Sequence record: LC819007.1
Reading direction: 5' to 3' (one strand)
Length of the DNA: 64,000 nt
The notes below the pieces were generated by a model. It saw nothing but the letters and a program-made list of their open reading frames with translations, made no database searches and was not told the origin of the DNA. Position numbers and translations under genes: made by a program. Below, piece by piece: positions 39,463 to 49,177 of the stretch. Each line of letters begins with the position of its first letter. Position 1 is the stretch's first letter.

Positions 39463-40236
39463 TTACCAGCCAGTCCAGACGGCCTTCGAACGCGCCTTAG
39501 CGACCGAGGGCAATTGCCAGCCGAGCGAGTCCATCAGCTCGTGGACGTTGAGCTGCACGCTCTCGTTGCCCACACCTGCGGTTTCGATCAGCGTACGCGT
39601 ACCCGCTTCGACCTGACCGCGGGTAAAGGACACGTCTTCCAGACCTTCGAGTGCCGGGCTGTTGTACTTCTCAGCCACCGACATGCCCGGTTCGTTCACA
39701 TAGTCAAACGTGACGATGGTCTTGATGTACCGGTTTATCACGCCGTTGACCATCTTGTCATCAGTGAACGAGCGGATCGAGAAGCAGACGTTTTCGGCCG
39801 GATTCTGCAACTGCTTTTCCAGCACATAGCCCAGCGGGCCATTCGGCGCCACTTCGGCAATGATCGCTACGATCGGACGGCCTTGGTCGTCCTTGTAGTT
39901 ATCGAAGTCGAGCGACACCGAAGCAAAGTGGCAGCACACCTTGTCTTCGTGAATCTGCAGTAGTCGAGCGTAGTAAGCCTGCATCGACATGTTGGCGTCA
40001 CGGCGGGGATGCCCGTATTCGCCACGAAGCGCGCCACGCTTGACGCGGCGCATGAACGAGCTGGATTCCTCGAAGAATTCCCGAGCTGCGTCCGCACGGT
40101 AATACATCCCGGCGCTGTTGAACATGTTCAACGCCCCGATGACCATCACGTAGTAGCCGCGCTCGTTCTTCTTCAGTTCTCCCACCTTGTTCGTCCCGTT
40201 GAGTCGGGTACAGGTGAAGGAAACGTTGTTGAGCAT
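39463..40236 (-). CDS. Prohead protease (phiKZ gp175 / SPN3US gp245 family)
   Basis: GEYGHP (His), FSIRS (Ser), TFDYVNEPG; C-terminal self-cleavage sites ALEGLE and GNE. Confidence 0.88.
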   Translation of the reverse strand: MLNNVSFTCTRLNGTNKVGELKKNERGYYVMVIGALNMFNSAGMYYRADAAREFFEESSSFMRRVKRGALRGEYGHPRRDANMSMQAYYARLLQIHEDKVCCHFASVSLDFDNYKDDQGRPIVAIIAEVAPNGPLGYVLEKQLQNPAENVCFSIRSFTDDKMVNGVINRYIKTIVTFDYVNEPGMSVAEKYNSPALEGLEDVSFTRGQVEAGTRTLIETAGVGNESVQLNVHELMDSLGWQLPSVAKARSKAVWTGW

Positions 40237-42749: not shown

Positions 42750-45700
42750 TTATGCCTTGCCTTCGCGGTAAGCCTTGATCACCCGTTTCGCTGCCACCAT
42801 CAGCAGCGTCGTGGTAGTTCCGATGATGTACGGCGAGGTCACAATACGAGCAGCAAGTGAGTTAGCCCCGAAGACCGCGTCGATCTCGACACCGGACTCC
42901 GTACGGATGTTATCGTTAAACACCCGGCCGAACACGGTCTTCAGCTGGTTGCCGAAGACGCCCTTGTCACCCACACCAGCCGACACTCGTGTGCTGATGT
43001 ACACCCGGATACATGCGGTATCCATCAACAACGGGTCGGTGCCGATGCGGAACTCATCCGACACCTGGCCCGTGTAGGCCCGACGTCCGATTGCCACATT
43101 GCGCCCAGCGATCCGCTTGTCCGACCATTGAGCCAGTCCTCGCAGACTGTTCGACATGTCTTCCAGATCGCCGTTGTAGTAGACCTCGATGCGCTCGATC
43201 TTGCCCTTGACCTTGGCCTGGGGCGTCTGGGCCTGCAGCACGCGCAGGGTGTCCAGCGTTTCCTCGTCCAGGAAGTGATTCCGGGCTGATTGCGCATCTT
43301 CAATGATGCATAACATACTTTCGGGCTCTACCGCGTCGTGCTCCTTGACCATGCGGTGAATCTCCTGGTCAAAGTTCACCACGATGTCCTTGATCTTCAC
43401 CTGTTCAGAGATGAGTTTCTTGGTCAGTCGGGTGGAGATAGCAGACGAGTCTTCCAGCGTGTCAGGCGACTCCATCAGCACCACCTTAGCAAGCGTGGCG
43501 GACTTCCAGATGATCTGCTTCGGGTTGAGCATGTCGCGCTCGAAGAAGCCGGTGTTGTAAGCGATCGGCTCACCCACTGCAAACACCTGCCCCTCGACCA
43601 GGTCCGTCTTGATGGTGTGCGGAATCGTGAGACCTGCAGCGTTGCCGTAGCGACGACCGAGAATCACACCCTTCTGCTCACCGTCATCGAACTGCACCAC
43701 GATACCGTCGGGTTTCACCGACAGCACCTTACCGGGCTTCTTGGCCGTGACCGCAAACATGTCACCCACGCGGTGCGGGATCACTTGTTCATAGCCCGTA
43801 CGCACCATCGCTTGGCGGTAACCTTCACAGGACACCACGTGACGATTTTGAATGCCGATAAAGTTCACCCGCTTTGGATCGTCCTTGGTCGAGCCTGGCG
43901 ACACCAGGGCCGAGGTCGACAGCAACGAAGTCGGACCGTGCGCTGCCGCATCATACGGACGCGACGTGCCACGCAGCGAATCAAACTGCGGGTTGGCCGA
44001 AGTAAAGACGTTGATGGCCACGTCCGAGGAGTCCACCGTCGACTCCGAGATCACCCCCATGTCGTTGCGGTGGTAGATCCGGGTAGACTTCACCATCGAG
44101 CGGGAGTTACGACCACCCGTACCCGAATACGTGACTGCCTCGTTTTCCTTCAAGTTCTGGATCGGGTTGATTTCCGAGACCTGATCTTTGGCCGGATCTT
44201 GCTGAATCGCAATCCACACCGCGTACGGATTCACTTCCAGCCCGTAACGATGCTTGCCCGGTCGACCGCTGTGCACCCGTGCCGACTTGACCAGCTCCGC
44301 GTACACCGCACCCGAGAACCGCTCGTAGCCCTTGATCCGCATATACCGCGTATCCTGGCTGTCCGGGTGTTGGTCGTCCGTGAGCATTTCCGAGGCACGA
44401 ATCAGAAGCTTCGTGAACACGGTCGGCTCTTTCATCTCGATCAGCAGATCGCGGGTGATCGGGTCGACGAACATCTGCTCCAGCAAGTCGAGCTCGCGCA
44501 GATACTTGACACCCAGCTTCTTCTCTTCGAACAGATTGAAGTAGACATCTTTCTTGCTGAACTCCTCGGTCGGGAACCGCGAAGTCGTCTCGTAGAAGTC
44601 ACGCCAGCCACCGAGCACCATCGTCGCCAGCTTGTCCTTCCGGGAGAACACGTACGTGCGGTCGTCGAAGTTGATCGACCACTCATCTTCCACCAGATTC
44701 GCCCGCTTACCCACCGGCAGCACGCGCATCGAGGTCGGCTGCACCAGCTGCAGCACCGCATCCCAACCCAGCAGATAACCCAACACCACGCCCACCGGAA
44801 TCATCTTGCCGAAGACTTTCAGCTCCGCAAACTCCAGCGGGGCCTTGCGGCTGTCCAGACCCAGGATCGATTCGATCGACGGTGCAGGCCGCATGCCAGC
44901 TTCGTCGTGGATGTACAGGTTCTCGTCGAACCCAGCCAACAGCTCGCCTTTGCCTTCCACGGCGCGACCCATCACGATAAACCCAGGGCTCATCCGCAGA
45001 CCGAGGATAGTCGCCATGTCGAAGTGGCACTTGTACGGCTTGCCCTCGACCATCAGCGTGAATTCACGAAAGCCCATGGCAATCGCCGAGATCAAACGCG
45101 GTGTCTTGCGACCCTTATCGAATCCCGAGCCCGGCACCATGTTCGTGACCGTCTGATCACTGACGCTCAAACCGCGCGCCATGATTGCCTGACGAATCCA
45201 CTTACCCCAGTCATTCACCCGACGCTGGCTACGCTCAGCAAACACCTTGCCGTAGTAGCTGGTCAGTGCAACCTGATCCGGCGCGATCTTGCGGATGGGC
45301 ATGTCGCCACGTTGCATCCGCATGCGGTAGTTCACCCCGTTGATCTTGAAGTTGCCTTCATCGTCAACCTTCGGGATCTTCATCTTGATCGTCGACGGCG
45401 CGCCTTCGATCGGTTTCAGCTGCACCGTGTACTCGTGATGCGTACCGGTGATGTCTTCTACTTCTTCGACATCGAAGTTGTTGATCATCACCCCCGCCGA
45501 CTGCAGCGAGGAGACCATCGAGGAGATGTCGCGCTGCATGATCTCACGCGAATAGCGCTCGTTCCAGTTCAACAGCGTCGACTGCAGCATCGTCTTGTCG
45601 ATGATCGTCGGCTGATCCGGAATGGCCGGAGGCGTCTCGATCTTGAGCTTCTCGGGCGGGACCTTGACAAAGTCCTTCATCGTGCCTTCATGACCCAGCG

Positions 45701-47150
45701 GTGCAGGCAACGAATTGAAACGCTCACTCGCTTCCAGCAAACGCCGATACTCAGCCGCGGTGATCGCGCCCGAGTCAGCCGCTTTGGCCAGTTGGTGCTG
45801 GAATGCTTCCTGGTGATCGACCGGGAAGAACTTCGGTTGCTTAGCCGATGCCGCAGGACCACCTGCTGTAGCCACACCGTCATCCGAGACAGCCAGCTCA
45901 GGCGTTTCCGCATGGGCATCTTCCGTCTCGTCGTCATCTGCATCCGGAGGCGGCGGAGCGTCGTCTTCCGACACCGAGGTGATTTCCAGCGCTTCGAGGT
46001 CCTTGTCGATTTCCGCCATGAAGTTGGCGTGATCGGTTTCGGCATCGTACCCGGCGTAAGCTTGTGCCTCCGTCACTTCGTCATCGTTGGTCGACGACTT
46101 GGTGTTGGGCGAGCCACTGGCCGCGTCCATGCCTTCGGTCTCGGTCGGGTCCACAGCGTCCGGTGTTTCCGGCTGGCCCTTGTCCGGACCTTCCGGCAGA
46201 TCATCGGTCACCGGCTTGCCTTCCTCGTCACCGAGGTTCTCCGGCATATCGACGCTACGGACTTCGGTGACAGCCATCAGCATACGCAGGAACATTTTCT
46301 GCATCACCGACGGGTCCCACGAACCCTTCTTGAGCGGCTCGATCTCCGGGTTCTCCTGCTTCGCTTCTTCGTGCGCCCGGATCGTCGCCTGGTCAGGCTT
46401 GCGCCATTCTTCCAGCAACGCGAGATCCACCACACAGAAGCGATCCGCTTCACGCAGAATCAGCTTGACGTTCGAGACGTCCGGGATGTACTTGTGGATC
46501 AGCGACTTCTCGGCGCGATGCTCGCCCAGCCAGGTCCACAGGTGATGCAAGAGGATCAACTCGTACGAATTGAAGATCCCCATGTTCTTCGTGGTCCAGC
46601 CCTGCACCGAACGATCCAGCACGGTCCGCGCGGGCAACTGTTGTGGCAGCTGCAGCTCGATGTACTGGTGATAACCCGTGTGCACATTCTGGCCAATCGA
46701 CTGGAACAGCGTCGCGAAGATGTTGTACCAGCGGTTGTGGAACGTGAACAGGTTGCGCTGGTACTTGTAACGCCCCAGCAGCAGCCCGTAATTGTGCGTG
46801 ACGATCACGCGGTTATCGCGCTTCATCGCCTCGATATCAATCGAAGCCCGGAAACGCGGATGGGCGGTGCGGAACTGACGGATCTTGGTGTTGATATCCC
46901 CCGGGATAGGCCGGGGGTTGCCCTTCATCTCCACCAGCGTCGTGTGATGCGTGATCCGCAACGGCTTGGTATTCTTCTGGTAAAACAGCATGTCTTCGCT
47001 CGGCCACGGATTCGTGACCGACGGCGAGACATAGTGCACCATCGCCATGGCCGGCAGTTCAAACCGCGTCACCAAGGGCAGCGGTGGCGAAGTGAACTGG
47101 CCGGTACGGCGCAGCACAAAGTTGCGAAAGAAAAACTGGTATTGAATCAT
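42750..47150 (-). CDS. rpoB: Virion RNA polymerase beta subunit, N-terminal part (phiKZ gp178-like)
   Basis: FKINGVNYR..QRGD, ESTVDSSDVAIN, DDPKRVNFIGIQNRH, KVVLME..EDSSAIS, GVGDKGVFGNQLKTV are beta conserved regions. Confidence 0.92.
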   Translation of the reverse strand: MIQYQFFFRNFVLRRTGQFTSPPLPLVTRFELPAMAMVHYVSPSVTNPWPSEDMLFYQKNTKPLRITHHTTLVEMKGNPRPIPGDINTKIRQFRTAHPRFRASIDIEAMKRDNRVIVTHNYGLLLGRYKYQRNLFTFHNRWYNIFATLFQSIGQNVHTGYHQYIELQLPQQLPARTVLDRSVQGWTTKNMGIFNSYELILLHHLWTWLGEHRAEKSLIHKYIPDVSNVKLILREADRFCVVDLALLEEWRKPDQATIRAHEEAKQENPEIEPLKKGSWDPSVMQKMFLRMLMAVTEVRSVDMPENLGDEEGKPVTDDLPEGPDKGQPETPDAVDPTETEGMDAASGSPNTKSSTNDDEVTEAQAYAGYDAETDHANFMAEIDKDLEALEITSVSEDDAPPPPDADDDETEDAHAETPELAVSDDGVATAGGPAASAKQPKFFPVDHQEAFQHQLAKAADSGAITAAEYRRLLEASERFNSLPAPLGHEGTMKDFVKVPPEKLKIETPPAIPDQPTIIDKTMLQSTLLNWNERYSREIMQRDISSMVSSLQSAGVMINNFDVEEVEDITGTHHEYTVQLKPIEGAPSTIKMKIPKVDDEGNFKINGVNYRMRMQRGDMPIRKIAPDQVALTSYYGKVFAERSQRRVNDWGKWIRQAIMARGLSVSDQTVTNMVPGSGFDKGRKTPRLISAIAMGFREFTLMVEGKPYKCHFDMATILGLRMSPGFIVMGRAVEGKGELLAGFDENLYIHDEAGMRPAPSIESILGLDSRKAPLEFAELKVFGKMIPVGVVLGYLLGWDAVLQLVQPTSMRVLPVGKRANLVEDEWSINFDDRTYVFSRKDKLATMVLGGWRDFYETTSRFPTEEFSKKDVYFNLFEEKKLGVKYLRELDLLEQMFVDPITRDLLIEMKEPTVFTKLLIRASEMLTDDQHPDSQDTRYMRIKGYERFSGAVYAELVKSARVHSGRPGKHRYGLEVNPYAVWIAIQQDPAKDQVSEINPIQNLKENEAVTYSGTGGRNSRSMVKSTRIYHRNDMGVISESTVDSSDVAINVFTSANPQFDSLRGTSRPYDAAAHGPTSLLSTSALVSPGSTKDDPKRVNFIGIQNRHVVSCEGYRQAMVRTGYEQVIPHRVGDMFAVTAKKPGKVLSVKPDGIVVQFDDGEQKGVILGRRYGNAAGLTIPHTIKTDLVEGQVFAVGEPIAYNTGFFERDMLNPKQIIWKSATLAKVVLMESPDTLEDSSAISTRLTKKLISEQVKIKDIVVNFDQEIHRMVKEHDAVEPESMLCIIEDAQSARNHFLDEETLDTLRVLQAQTPQAKVKGKIERIEVYYNGDLEDMSNSLRGLAQWSDKRIAGRNVAIGRRAYTGQVSDEFRIGTDPLLMDTACIRVYISTRVSAGVGDKGVFGNQLKTVFGRVFNDNIRTESGVEIDAVFGANSLAARIVTSPYIIGTTTTLLMVAAKRVIKAYREGKA

Positions 47151-47152
47151 GG

Positions 47153-49177
47153 TTAATCCACTCGTGCGATGTCAAGCATGCTGTGGTCAATAAACTTGAC
47201 CATCACTTCCTTTTCACCGCTATCGTAAAGTTTGCGCAAACGATGGTTGCCGTCGAGAATGTAGATCTTCCCCTTCTCGCGAATACCGATCAGCGGCACA
47301 CTCGGGTCAGCCTTTTCCAGTCGGTCCTTGTCGAGGTCCTCGTCACCCTTGACGTTCCACGCCACATCCTTCATCTTGACACTCACCGCTTCGATGTTCT
47401 CAGCGATGTCGAAAATGTCGTTGATGTAGTAGTGCACGCCCCAATGGGTGAACGTGTCGGACTTGTGCTCCTGATAGACTTCGACAGCCGCGCCGGTGTC
47501 TTCCAGCGCTGAGGTAAGCGACCACTCTTCCATCGCGGGCTGCTTCGCCACGACGGGCTCACCCGTCAGGTTCCAGAGCACCAGCTCGACGGTAGCCACT
47601 GCACAGCTATAGAGCAGCTCACCGTTGGAGCCGATATACGCTTTGCGGGTCTTGAAGAACGCTTCGGCTTCCGCGATCGCTTCATCCGAATAGGCGATGT
47701 TCGCCGAGGAGGTGTCACCGTCGAAGTCAGCCGTCAGACGTTGCAGGTGGCTGGAGTGCGGAATCAGCGAATTCACAAACGCCGAGTCCTGGCGCGGGAA
47801 CTCATACGCCACGTACGCGTCACCCGCATCAATCCAGGCATCATCCAGCATGCGTCGCTCGTCGTGCGCCACCGTCACCCGCAGGTGCGTCTTGCTCGGA
47901 TAGATCGAACCGATCCCCGCCACCGGATAGCGCGTCAGGAAGAGCGGGTATTTACCGAAGTGGCGATACACGGACAAATAAAAGAGATCCGTCAGTGTGA
48001 GCGGGCGAACATGCTCACGACTGCGCGTCGGCGGCAACTGCGTGATGTCGTTGAAGACCTTGAACGTGCCATCCGGCCCCAGATACAGCAGGCCCAGATA
48101 GTAACCGTCGATCAAGAGCGGCTGGTTACGGATGTCTTCTTCGCGGAACGAGGCGATGATCTTCTCGATCCCTTCCTGCGTCGCCCACTTGTCATAGTAG
48201 CGCACATGCAGGAAGACGTCGCGAGGACGCCAGGTCTTCGGGTCCACCAAAATAGCGGCCGAGTTGACATCCGGGAACATCTTCGAGAGGAAGTCGCGCA
48301 CCTGGGCAGCGGACACCGGCAAAGTCGCCTGGAGATATTGGTATAGACCCAGGATGGTACTATTGAAGTCGGGGGTGCCTTTTTTGCCCAGCACCGTCAC
48401 GGCCGTGTTCATAGCCGTGATGACGTTCCGCGTACCATTGAAGATCCGACGCGAGGCAACCTTGCCGAGGAAGAGCTTCTTCTTGCCCTTGATCAGCGCC
48501 TCGATCATGTCGTAGAGCGCGACAAAGTTCAGCTGCATATCGAAACGCGGCTTGTCGATCACTTCGGCGTTCGTGCCGAGGCTCGATTCGACGATCACGT
48601 TCGAGAGCGCAATGAACTTGCGGTACAGCGTGTTGATCTCGTCCTCGCTCTTGCGATTGAGTTCGTCGATCTCGATGTCCCGCAGACCCGCAGGCATCAC
48701 CACGACATAACGGGTGAGCGCGGTTTCCTTGTGGGCTTCCACGAGCTTGATGTACTCGGCCCGGATGTTGGAGGTGCCCTGCTCGTAGTTGATCTCTTTC
48801 CAGTGTTCGAGGAAAAAGGCGTAACCGGTACGGGCTCCGTCCGAGGGCTTGCCCTTGACGAAGTCTTTCTGGCTGTCGTCCCACAGCGCCCAGGCTTTAC
48901 CAGCCATGATGTCGCCATAGAAGCGCTTGAGCTTCGTGATCGCCATGAAAATGAGCGGGTGGAAGATCGGTGCCTTGATGTCGATATAACCAAACAGCAG
49001 GCTACGACGTTCATCACCCACCCGACCGAAGATGTCTGTGGAGAACAGACCTTCGGGGTGGAAGTTGGTGGTCGCGCCGTCGAAGATATCGAGGGCCTTG
49101 ACCTGTTTGACGCTTTTCAGTTTTTCCGGTGTGAGATTCAGCAGCCCAATGTTAAAGGGCACAGACATTTTTTGCAT
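47153..49177 (-). CDS. rpoC: Virion RNA polymerase beta' catalytic (middle) subunit (phiKZ gp180-like) with C-terminal ParB/Srx-like extension
   Basis: GLFSTDIFG, RRIFNGTRNVI, TRYPVAG, catalytic ADFDGD; C-terminal PLIGIREKGKIYILDGNHRL. Confidence 0.92.
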   Translation of the reverse strand: MQKMSVPFNIGLLNLTPEKLKSVKQVKALDIFDGATTNFHPEGLFSTDIFGRVGDERRSLLFGYIDIKAPIFHPLIFMAITKLKRFYGDIMAGKAWALWDDSQKDFVKGKPSDGARTGYAFFLEHWKEINYEQGTSNIRAEYIKLVEAHKETALTRYVVVMPAGLRDIEIDELNRKSEDEINTLYRKFIALSNVIVESSLGTNAEVIDKPRFDMQLNFVALYDMIEALIKGKKKLFLGKVASRRIFNGTRNVITAMNTAVTVLGKKGTPDFNSTILGLYQYLQATLPVSAAQVRDFLSKMFPDVNSAAILVDPKTWRPRDVFLHVRYYDKWATQEGIEKIIASFREEDIRNQPLLIDGYYLGLLYLGPDGTFKVFNDITQLPPTRSREHVRPLTLTDLFYLSVYRHFGKYPLFLTRYPVAGIGSIYPSKTHLRVTVAHDERRMLDDAWIDAGDAYVAYEFPRQDSAFVNSLIPHSSHLQRLTADFDGDTSSANIAYSDEAIAEAEAFFKTRKAYIGSNGELLYSCAVATVELVLWNLTGEPVVAKQPAMEEWSLTSALEDTGAAVEVYQEHKSDTFTHWGVHYYINDIFDIAENIEAVSVKMKDVAWNVKGDEDLDKDRLEKADPSVPLIGIREKGKIYILDGNHRLRKLYDSGEKEVMVKFIDHSMLDIARVD

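Follow-up and report, generated by a model that had tools for sequence, protein, structure and literature searches.

The window analysed here comprises bases 1-64000 (64,000 nucleotides) of the 291-kb genome of Ralstonia phage FLC4-3B (LC819007.1), a jumbo phage with the plant-wilt pathogen R. pseudosolanacearum as isolation host (PMC11530567). Its minus strand carries gp43 (47153..49177), an open reading frame (ORF) of 674 amino acids (aa) that joins, in one frame, the beta'N part of a virion RNA polymerase (RNAP), a linker and a module with the fold shared by ParB and sulfiredoxin (Srx); the frame is uninterrupted from 49177 to 47153 and closes with a stop codon at 47153-47155. An initial annotation of the window had described this arrangement as a ParB/Srx-like domain fused behind two protease sites to the catalytic beta' subunit. 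We lean slightly towards the reading that the virion RNAP acts as a loading vehicle for the ParB/Srx module, which would serve in early infection after release at A-x-E sites in the linker. The parts of this reading differ in strength: there is good support for packaging of the module, its release by cutting at A-x-E is a plausible step, it is probably nucleotide-dependent, and its ejection is what we infer.

A virion RNAP subunit extended by a ParB/Srx-fold module

Residues 1-538 of gp43 (47564..49177, minus strand) cover positions 1-538 of the 539-position RNAP family phrog_2986 (E 1.5e-205) and are orthologous to phiKZ gp180 and 201phi2-1 gp275; tblastn searches with this part gave matches in about 300 jumbo-phage records. 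The match ends where the initial annotation had placed the limit of the RNAP homology, and the unfused orthologues stop at the same point: FLC9 gp41, 201phi2-1 gp275 and most metagenomic relatives (~540 aa) terminate a few residues past an L-T-G-[DE] motif. The catalytic Mg-binding motif DFDGD is found at aa 484-488 (47714..47728, minus strand) and is invariant in the beta'N alignment of relatives. It is the universal catalytic motif of phiKZ gp180, a virion RNAP subunit with a copy number of ~10 per virion (PMC10612078). Moreover, the gene order around gp43 is that of 201phi2-1 gp276/gp275/gp273-274, whose products have been detected in virions by mass spectrometry (MS), their annotations pointing to similarity with phiKZ gp180 and gp178. 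As judged by DFDGD, orthology and synteny, gp43 aa 1-538 is the virion RNAP beta'N subunit of chimallivirus type, in agreement with the carrier proposed initially. In contrast to gp43, phiKZ gp180 and 201phi2-1 gp275 end ~55-60 aa past DFDGD and have no appended domain. That a protein of the gp43 type is a virion protein is known from its RP31 homologue ORF39, of which MS of virions recovered 26 unique peptides, covering 41% of the protein (Table S3 of PMC5468394); for FLC4-3B itself the same is predicted from homology.

The last 108 residues (aa 567-674; 47156..47479, minus strand) match phrog_17560, a phage family of uncharacterised function (E 6.6e-16, positions 3-106 of 119). The peptide strings quoted in the initial annotation are all present in the translation, and the interval that it had assigned to the domain, 47153-47536, consists of the stop codon and residues 548-674. 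An exhaustive HMMER search of 1.8 billion proteins (E <= 1e-3) yielded 400 family representatives at 50% identity, mostly stand-alone proteins of 105-150 aa; about 20 long proteins, in which 5-10 repeated stretches matched residues ~91-119 and nothing else, were dropped as repeat-protein noise. This defines a large unnamed ParB/Srx family of about 400 clusters. Alignment of 95 of the 400 representatives showed that a proline and the motif D-G-x-H-R are invariant, and that residues Y, E, Y, W, R, D and K are near-invariant. In gp43 the motif reads D-G-N-H-R (aa 642-646; 47240..47254, minus strand) and is located where the ParB/Srx superfamily binds nucleotide phosphate. When compared with the PDB, the family profile found SbnI (E 4e-7), whose DGVHR is aligned to the DGxHR of the family, and then, weakly, ParB and sulfiredoxin.

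The AlphaFold model of the module, based on the 95-member alignment, had a predicted local distance difference test score (pLDDT) of 88 and a predicted template modelling score (pTM) of 0.79. The top 50 Foldseek matches to this model in the PDB all belong to the ParB/Srx superfamily (Srx, 1vk1, CDP-bound ParB, Noc, SbnI, SerK, PadC, KorB and Atu1540), with probabilities mostly ~1.0, template modelling (TM) scores of ~0.3-0.5 and E-values of 1.5e-3 or weaker. The best matches in BFVD were the RP31 homologue and phage proteins named 'ParB/Sulfiredoxin domain-containing' in UniProt. The module has the ParB/Srx fold, as the initial annotation had proposed, to which the family adds an N-terminal hairpin of its own with the pattern Y-x-E ... 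F-x-H-x-G.

Searches for a closer identity gave little. ParBc_2 (PF08857) scored the module at 20.6-21.1 bits, under its gathering threshold of 23.6, and matched only 1 of the 95 family members; no Pfam ParB model reached threshold for the module or its family. Single-sequence phmmer of the module against the PDB returned only spurious designed coiled coils and armadillo repeats, and full-length gp43 returned nothing useful. With the single module as query, a word-indexed search for homologues turned up one protein, and in an alignment-based search all names were 'hypothetical protein'. Scans with NCBIfam and PADLOC gave no meaningful match, the NCBIfam SbnI model scoring 12-22 bits against a cut-off of 350, and they thus provide no link to known defence systems.

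SbnI/SerK and sulfiredoxin are the closest relatives of the module in sequence and fold, and SbnI shares its D-G-x-H-R. Even so, neither identity fits. The catalytic cysteine of sulfiredoxin (G-C-H-R) is replaced by asparagine in gp43 and the position is variable across the family, and sulfiredoxin was ruled out on the basis of this motif. With regard to SbnI and SerK, the glutamate of the SbnI L-H-E segment, which we take to be their catalytic residue, is aligned with the conserved tryptophan of the family, and the C-terminal substrate domain of these kinases has no counterpart; a SerK-type kinase identity was ruled out on both grounds.

Linker motifs and the question of cleavage

Between the two parts lies a linker of 28 aa (aa 539-566; 47480..47563, minus strand), which is predicted to be disordered, as the full-length AlphaFold model has pLDDT values of 35-42 across aa 511-567. 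The ratio of nonsynonymous to synonymous substitution rates (dN/dS) between FLC4-3B and RP12 is 0.41 in the linker, 0.08 in the RNAP part and 0.12 in the module, and the module is under purifying selection. The two candidate prohead-protease sites noted initially, A-M-E (aa 548-550; 47528..47536) and A-L-E (aa 557-559; 47501..47509), are both present, but the linker contains three A-x-E motifs rather than two. The third, A-V-E (aa 564-566; 47480..47488; all on the minus strand), is situated at the module boundary, one residue before the conserved Y-x-E. In RP12 and RP31 the linker is 10 aa shorter, and the aligned A-L-E is the junction site, one residue before Y-Q-E. An internal translation start of the module at Met549 was considered and rejected, there being no convincing ribosome-binding site and no conservation of the methionine.

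Three of the four A-x-E motifs of gp43 lie inside the 28-aa linker. The Poisson probability of this (~4e-4) is overstated because the linker is rich in alanine and glutamate, and a composition-preserving shuffle gave p ~0.02. The pattern across lineages, which is specific with regard to position, is a stronger argument than this single-protein statistic. The linkers of 30 metagenomic clusters carrying the fusion vary in sequence and in length (8-49 aa), and they contain 34 A-x-E motifs per 795 aa as against 68 per 19,322 aa elsewhere in these proteins, a 12-fold higher density. Shuffled linkers of the same composition are expected to hold 10.0 +/- 2.8 motifs, and none of 5000 shuffles reached 34. 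Furthermore, 27 of the 30 clusters have [SAG]-x-E no more than 16 aa from the RNAP end, and among the ~17 fused clusters that keep Y-x-E, 16 have a junction [SAG]-x-E one residue before it, compared to 3 of 79 stand-alone homologues. The closest stand-alone proteins start 3 residues ahead of the junction tyrosine. In one metagenomic relative (L016), where the beta'N extension comprises two module copies and a third domain, A-x-E is present at each of the three module boundaries.

A candidate protease is encoded in the same gene cluster. gp38 (39463..40236, minus strand), 7 kb downstream of gp43, matches phrog_3014, 'head maturation protease' (E 6e-94). Its SPN3US homologue gp245 cuts after A-x-E (PMC10052503), whereas the cleavage motif of phiKZ and 201phi2-1 is S/A/G-x-E, and in 201phi2-1 the virion RNAP beta subunit is trimmed by the protease (PMC10052503, PMC5694885). 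The linker motifs, enriched in the fused relatives, fit the A-x-E specificity of the SPN3US enzyme and agree with the S/A/G-x-E consensus invoked in the initial annotation.

Several observations weigh against release of the module, or against its having an enzymatic role of the kind assumed. Three divergent fused clusters are without the motif. The junction glutamate is partly intrinsic to the domain, being found in 58 of 87 stand-alone proteins, and the fused lineages share ancestry, so that the counts are not independent events. The virion RNAP subunits of SPN3US are uncleaved, and 13 of the 14 mapped sites in that phage remove N-terminal rather than C-terminal pieces (PMC10052503). RP31 ORF39 is listed at 74 kDa, close to the theoretical 75.2 kDa of the full-length protein (PMC5468394 Table S3), while the trimmed RNAP part is expected at about 62 kDa. 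Copies inserted internally in beta'C and beta (see below) show that the module can function while tethered. Finally, the residues that SerK/SbnI, Srx and ParB use for catalysis are not conserved, and the chemistry ascribed to the family is putative.

It should be added that the RP31 mass carries limited weight, because the same table is coarse and puts the portal protein ORF85 (102.7 kDa, observed 100 kDa) and the major capsid protein ORF90 (76.8 kDa, observed 75 kDa) near their precursor masses (PMC5468394 Table S3), although both are trimmed in phiKZ, 201phi2-1 and SPN3US. Either maturation differs in Ripduovirus or the 'observed mass' column is nominal. On all this evidence, the chances that the prohead protease cuts the linker appear roughly even.

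Distribution, other carriers and alternative readings

The same fused ORF is present in FLC1-1B, RP12 and RP31 besides FLC4-3B. A survey of gp180 homologues for C-terminal cargo, as suggested initially, showed that, of the ~300 jumbo-phage records with a beta'N subunit, only 5 contain the fusion, all of them from Ralstonia. The fusion is also present in 30 of the 120 nearest metagenomic clusters (90%-identity clusters), whose identity to gp43 is 46-89%; several of these are on contigs of 188-298 kb. Relatives with an RNAP part 81-86% identical have a short conserved tail instead of the module, which is therefore an accessory element, gained and lost, outside the catalytic core. In one metagenomic protein (P0261; L020:5001-6692) the beta'N tail is linker-like and has two [SA]-x-E motifs and no module, with the beta gene following 6 nucleotides on; this looks like loss of the module with the linker left behind.

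The module is also found on other carriers. It forms the C-terminal half of a 249-aa PA5oct protein detected in virions by electrospray ionisation tandem mass spectrometry (ESI-MS/MS), and it is located at the C-terminus of Xanthomonas phage Xoo-sp14 gp126 (L006:2190-5321), a 1044-aa portal homologue belonging to phrog_3004, which is tied to the phiKZ gp129/SPN3US gp81 portal family (with PMC5694885). In gp126 a long acidic linker precedes the module, and the motif is DGMKR, not DGxHR. Among metagenomic proteins, the module accompanies an InPase domain on an unrelated portal (P0116), and it is fused to MuF (P0052), to ART-PolyVal (P0061) and to a T7 gp0.7-like kinase (P0127). A recurrent order is LigD-type 3'-phosphoesterase, module and C-terminal region (P0083, P0114, P0123, P0137 and P0052, the last with MuF). 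This pairing hints at nucleic-acid end processing, and from its occurrence in MuF proteins a kinase-like end-healing function might be imagined, though as an idea only. Taken together, the portal, MuF, virion RNAP and polyvalent-effector partners mark the module as a recurrent capsid-cargo module. A Pseudomonas phage PAC2 protein (L004:4596-5345) has no RNAP homology, and its name was probably carried over from the Ralstonia fusion proteins via the shared module.

In two proteins of uncultured jumbo phages the module is placed internally in the virion RNAP, inside beta'C in place of an 18-aa loop (P0027; L013:383-2017) and inside beta (P0111; L024:5748-9359), and the flanks of these insertions contain no [SAG]-x-E. 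The motif is thus found in terminal linkers and not at internal insertions, which is the pattern expected if only the terminal copies are meant for release.

The region around these genes is rich in mobile elements. The beta'N genes of two metagenomic relatives (L015 and L016) are each split once by a group I intron (Rfam RF00028), with scores of 57.6 bits in L015 (above the gathering score) and 39.4 bits in L016, where the intron is clipped by the contig end; these relatives were read exon by exon, and the module is in the downstream exon in both. HNH homing-endonuclease ORFs adjoin the module gene or the virion RNAP genes in L014, L016 and L024. It seems that the module locus is an insertion hotspot for mobile elements, and this may explain the movement of the module between sites.

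As the main rival to release, the module could stay tethered to the virion RNAP for good as an uncleaved accessory domain acting in cis, a reading that we regard as possible but doubtful. Such a domain might sense or handle nucleotides for early transcription, anchor the polymerase to the genome end or to internal head structures so that ejection is ordered, or act on the template DNA. The full-length mass of RP31 ORF39 and the uncleaved RNAP subunits of SPN3US speak for it, as do the internal insertions with motif-free flanks, since one enzyme has then received the module at three graft sites. Against it stand the A-x-E motifs, conserved and specific in position within otherwise variable linkers, and the fact that the 81-86% identical polymerases, phiKZ and most relatives do without the module; moreover, family members are mostly free-standing or borne on portals and MuF proteins. 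The same three graft sites (beta'N C-terminus, beta'C loop and inside beta) could alternatively mean that the virion RNAP has in the module a dedicated partner rather than generic cargo, with a nucleotide-dependent activity where the ejected polymerase first contacts the genome. We judge this unlikely; if true, the module could prepare or protect the DNA end or early transcripts, or aid early transcription independent of the host RNAP.

A neutral accident, in which a small mobile gene between beta'N and beta lost its start and the upstream stop with no functional link resulting, is more improbable still. Insertions are indeed common where homing-endonuclease ORFs and group I introns crowd the locus in relatives, and the presence of the module varies among close relatives, but a dN/dS of 0.12, retention of the fusion from 89% down to 46% protein identity, the non-random motif pattern of the linker and repeated fusion to other capsid-internal proteins are difficult to reconcile with such an origin. 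We give very little credence to the idea that the module works as a canonical ParB and clamps DNA in a CTP-dependent manner for partition of the phage genome or nucleoid organisation. The fold does resemble the N-terminal domains of ParB and Noc, and homologues in Erwinia phages are annotated 'ParB'. However, the module is only 108 aa long and ends gp43, with no helix-turn-helix and no dimerisation domain, and these missing domains largely refute the idea. In addition, it has DGNHRLRK in place of the canonical GERRxRA, so that the GERR box is absent, no Pfam ParB model reaches threshold, and the best sequence relatives are the SbnI/SerK kinases. DNA clamping, one of the activities considered in the initial annotation, is unlikely for the same reasons. 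A sequencing or annotation artefact, by which a stop codon after the RNAP part or a frameshift had been missed, is refuted by distribution and has next to no probability: the same open frame is found in four independently sequenced isolates and in the 30 metagenomic clusters from many samples, and the RP31 protein was detected at fusion size.

With regard to the surroundings of gp43 in the window, gp42 (42750..47150, minus strand) encodes the virion RNAP beta subunit of phiKZ gp178 type (phrog_3148, E 0) and starts 2 nucleotides past the gp43 stop. Upstream of gp43, a divergent gene encodes a giant cell-puncturing protein. Two starts are possible for gp43, ATG 49177 (MQKM...) and the ATG at 49168 annotated in GenBank, 3 codons downstream of the longest-ORF start; the longer N-terminus is conserved in relatives. 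A 1272-aa ORF at 43338-47156 on the plus strand, antisense to gp42, is not a real gene but a shadow ORF opposite the RNAP beta gene, which is GC-rich. A scan for sigma-70 promoters and terminators gave background level only.

Proposed mechanism and comparison with known systems

According to the reading we slightly favour, in which the virion RNAP loads a releasable module, a mobile single-domain ParB/Srx module would have been acquired at the beta'N C-terminus via a flexible linker. The polymerase becomes part of the prohead and leaves the virion along with the DNA, so that fusion to it would guarantee a few copies of the module per virion at the start of infection. The prohead protease may cut the linker at A-x-E during head maturation, after which the module would travel as a free internal head protein of ~12.6-14 kDa. 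Once in the cell, the DGxHR pocket would bind a nucleotide, and phosphotransfer, hydrolysis or nicking might follow, nicking having been reported for other solo ParB-like domains (PMC5512222). Its site of action could then be the incoming genome or its vicinity, or else a target in host takeover or defence.

During the first minutes of infection, jumbo phages of the phiKZ type have a naked genome to protect and express and only capsid-delivered proteins to do it with, and these proteins and their route into the head are poorly known. In this context, gp43 shows the multi-subunit virion RNAP in the role of carrier or scaffold for one more conserved, enzyme-like module. RP12 and RP31, in which the module is present, replicate under rifampicin, whereas RSL2 and RSF1, in which it is absent, do not, and Matsui et al. 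invoked 'factors present in RP12/RP31 but absent in RSL2/RSF1' for host-independent transcription (PMC5468394). The module is a concrete candidate for such a factor, but the link is speculative because phiKZ manages without it.

No description of this fusion or of a function for the phrog_17560 family was found in the literature, in line with the initial annotation, which knew of none. What is new is the multi-subunit virion RNAP as carrier, the family itself, and the occurrence of C-terminal fusions with protease motifs alongside internal insertions without them. The free, C-terminally fused and internally inserted forms make up a natural series that is useful for learning how cargo is loaded and released.

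The prohead-protease substrates of phiKZ-like phages (SPN3US gp245 and phiKZ gp175 sites) resemble gp43 in protease family, in the protease gene being in the same cluster and in motif, and the propeptide of 201phi2-1 virion RNAP beta is a precedent for trimming of a virion RNAP subunit. These known substrates, however, lose N-terminal propeptides, while the piece in gp43 is C-terminal, a conserved folded domain and a putative functional product. Fusion of effector domains to proteins that enter the capsid is in itself a known principle: Iyer, Burroughs, Anand, de Souza and Aravind (2017) described fusions to MuF, portal and N4-type virion RNAP, with ParB/Srx domains among the effectors (PMC5512222). 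Like the gp43 family, their polyvalent proteins carry an effector fused to a capsid protein and injected with the DNA, and ART-PolyVal, InPase, MuF and portal partners are shared. The hub in that work is the single-subunit N4-type virion RNAP, whereas the carrier here is the multi-subunit, split beta/beta' virion RNAP of phiKZ-like jumbo phages, unmentioned in PMC5512222, and gp43 has only two domains. The DdrB-type ParB models of Pfam gave no match at E <= 1 for gp43 or at E <= 0.01 for the 95 family members, which places the module outside the DdrB-like ParB family of that study. The DdrB/Dar head proteins of phage P1 offer a comparable case, in which a ParB/Srx-type domain is packaged in the head after proteolysis and is presumed to have a role in infection, DdrB being thought to be processed by its own C-terminal metallopeptidase domain (PMC5512222). 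For gp43, by contrast, it is the prohead protease that would do the cutting; the module is carried by an RNAP subunit and belongs to another sequence family.

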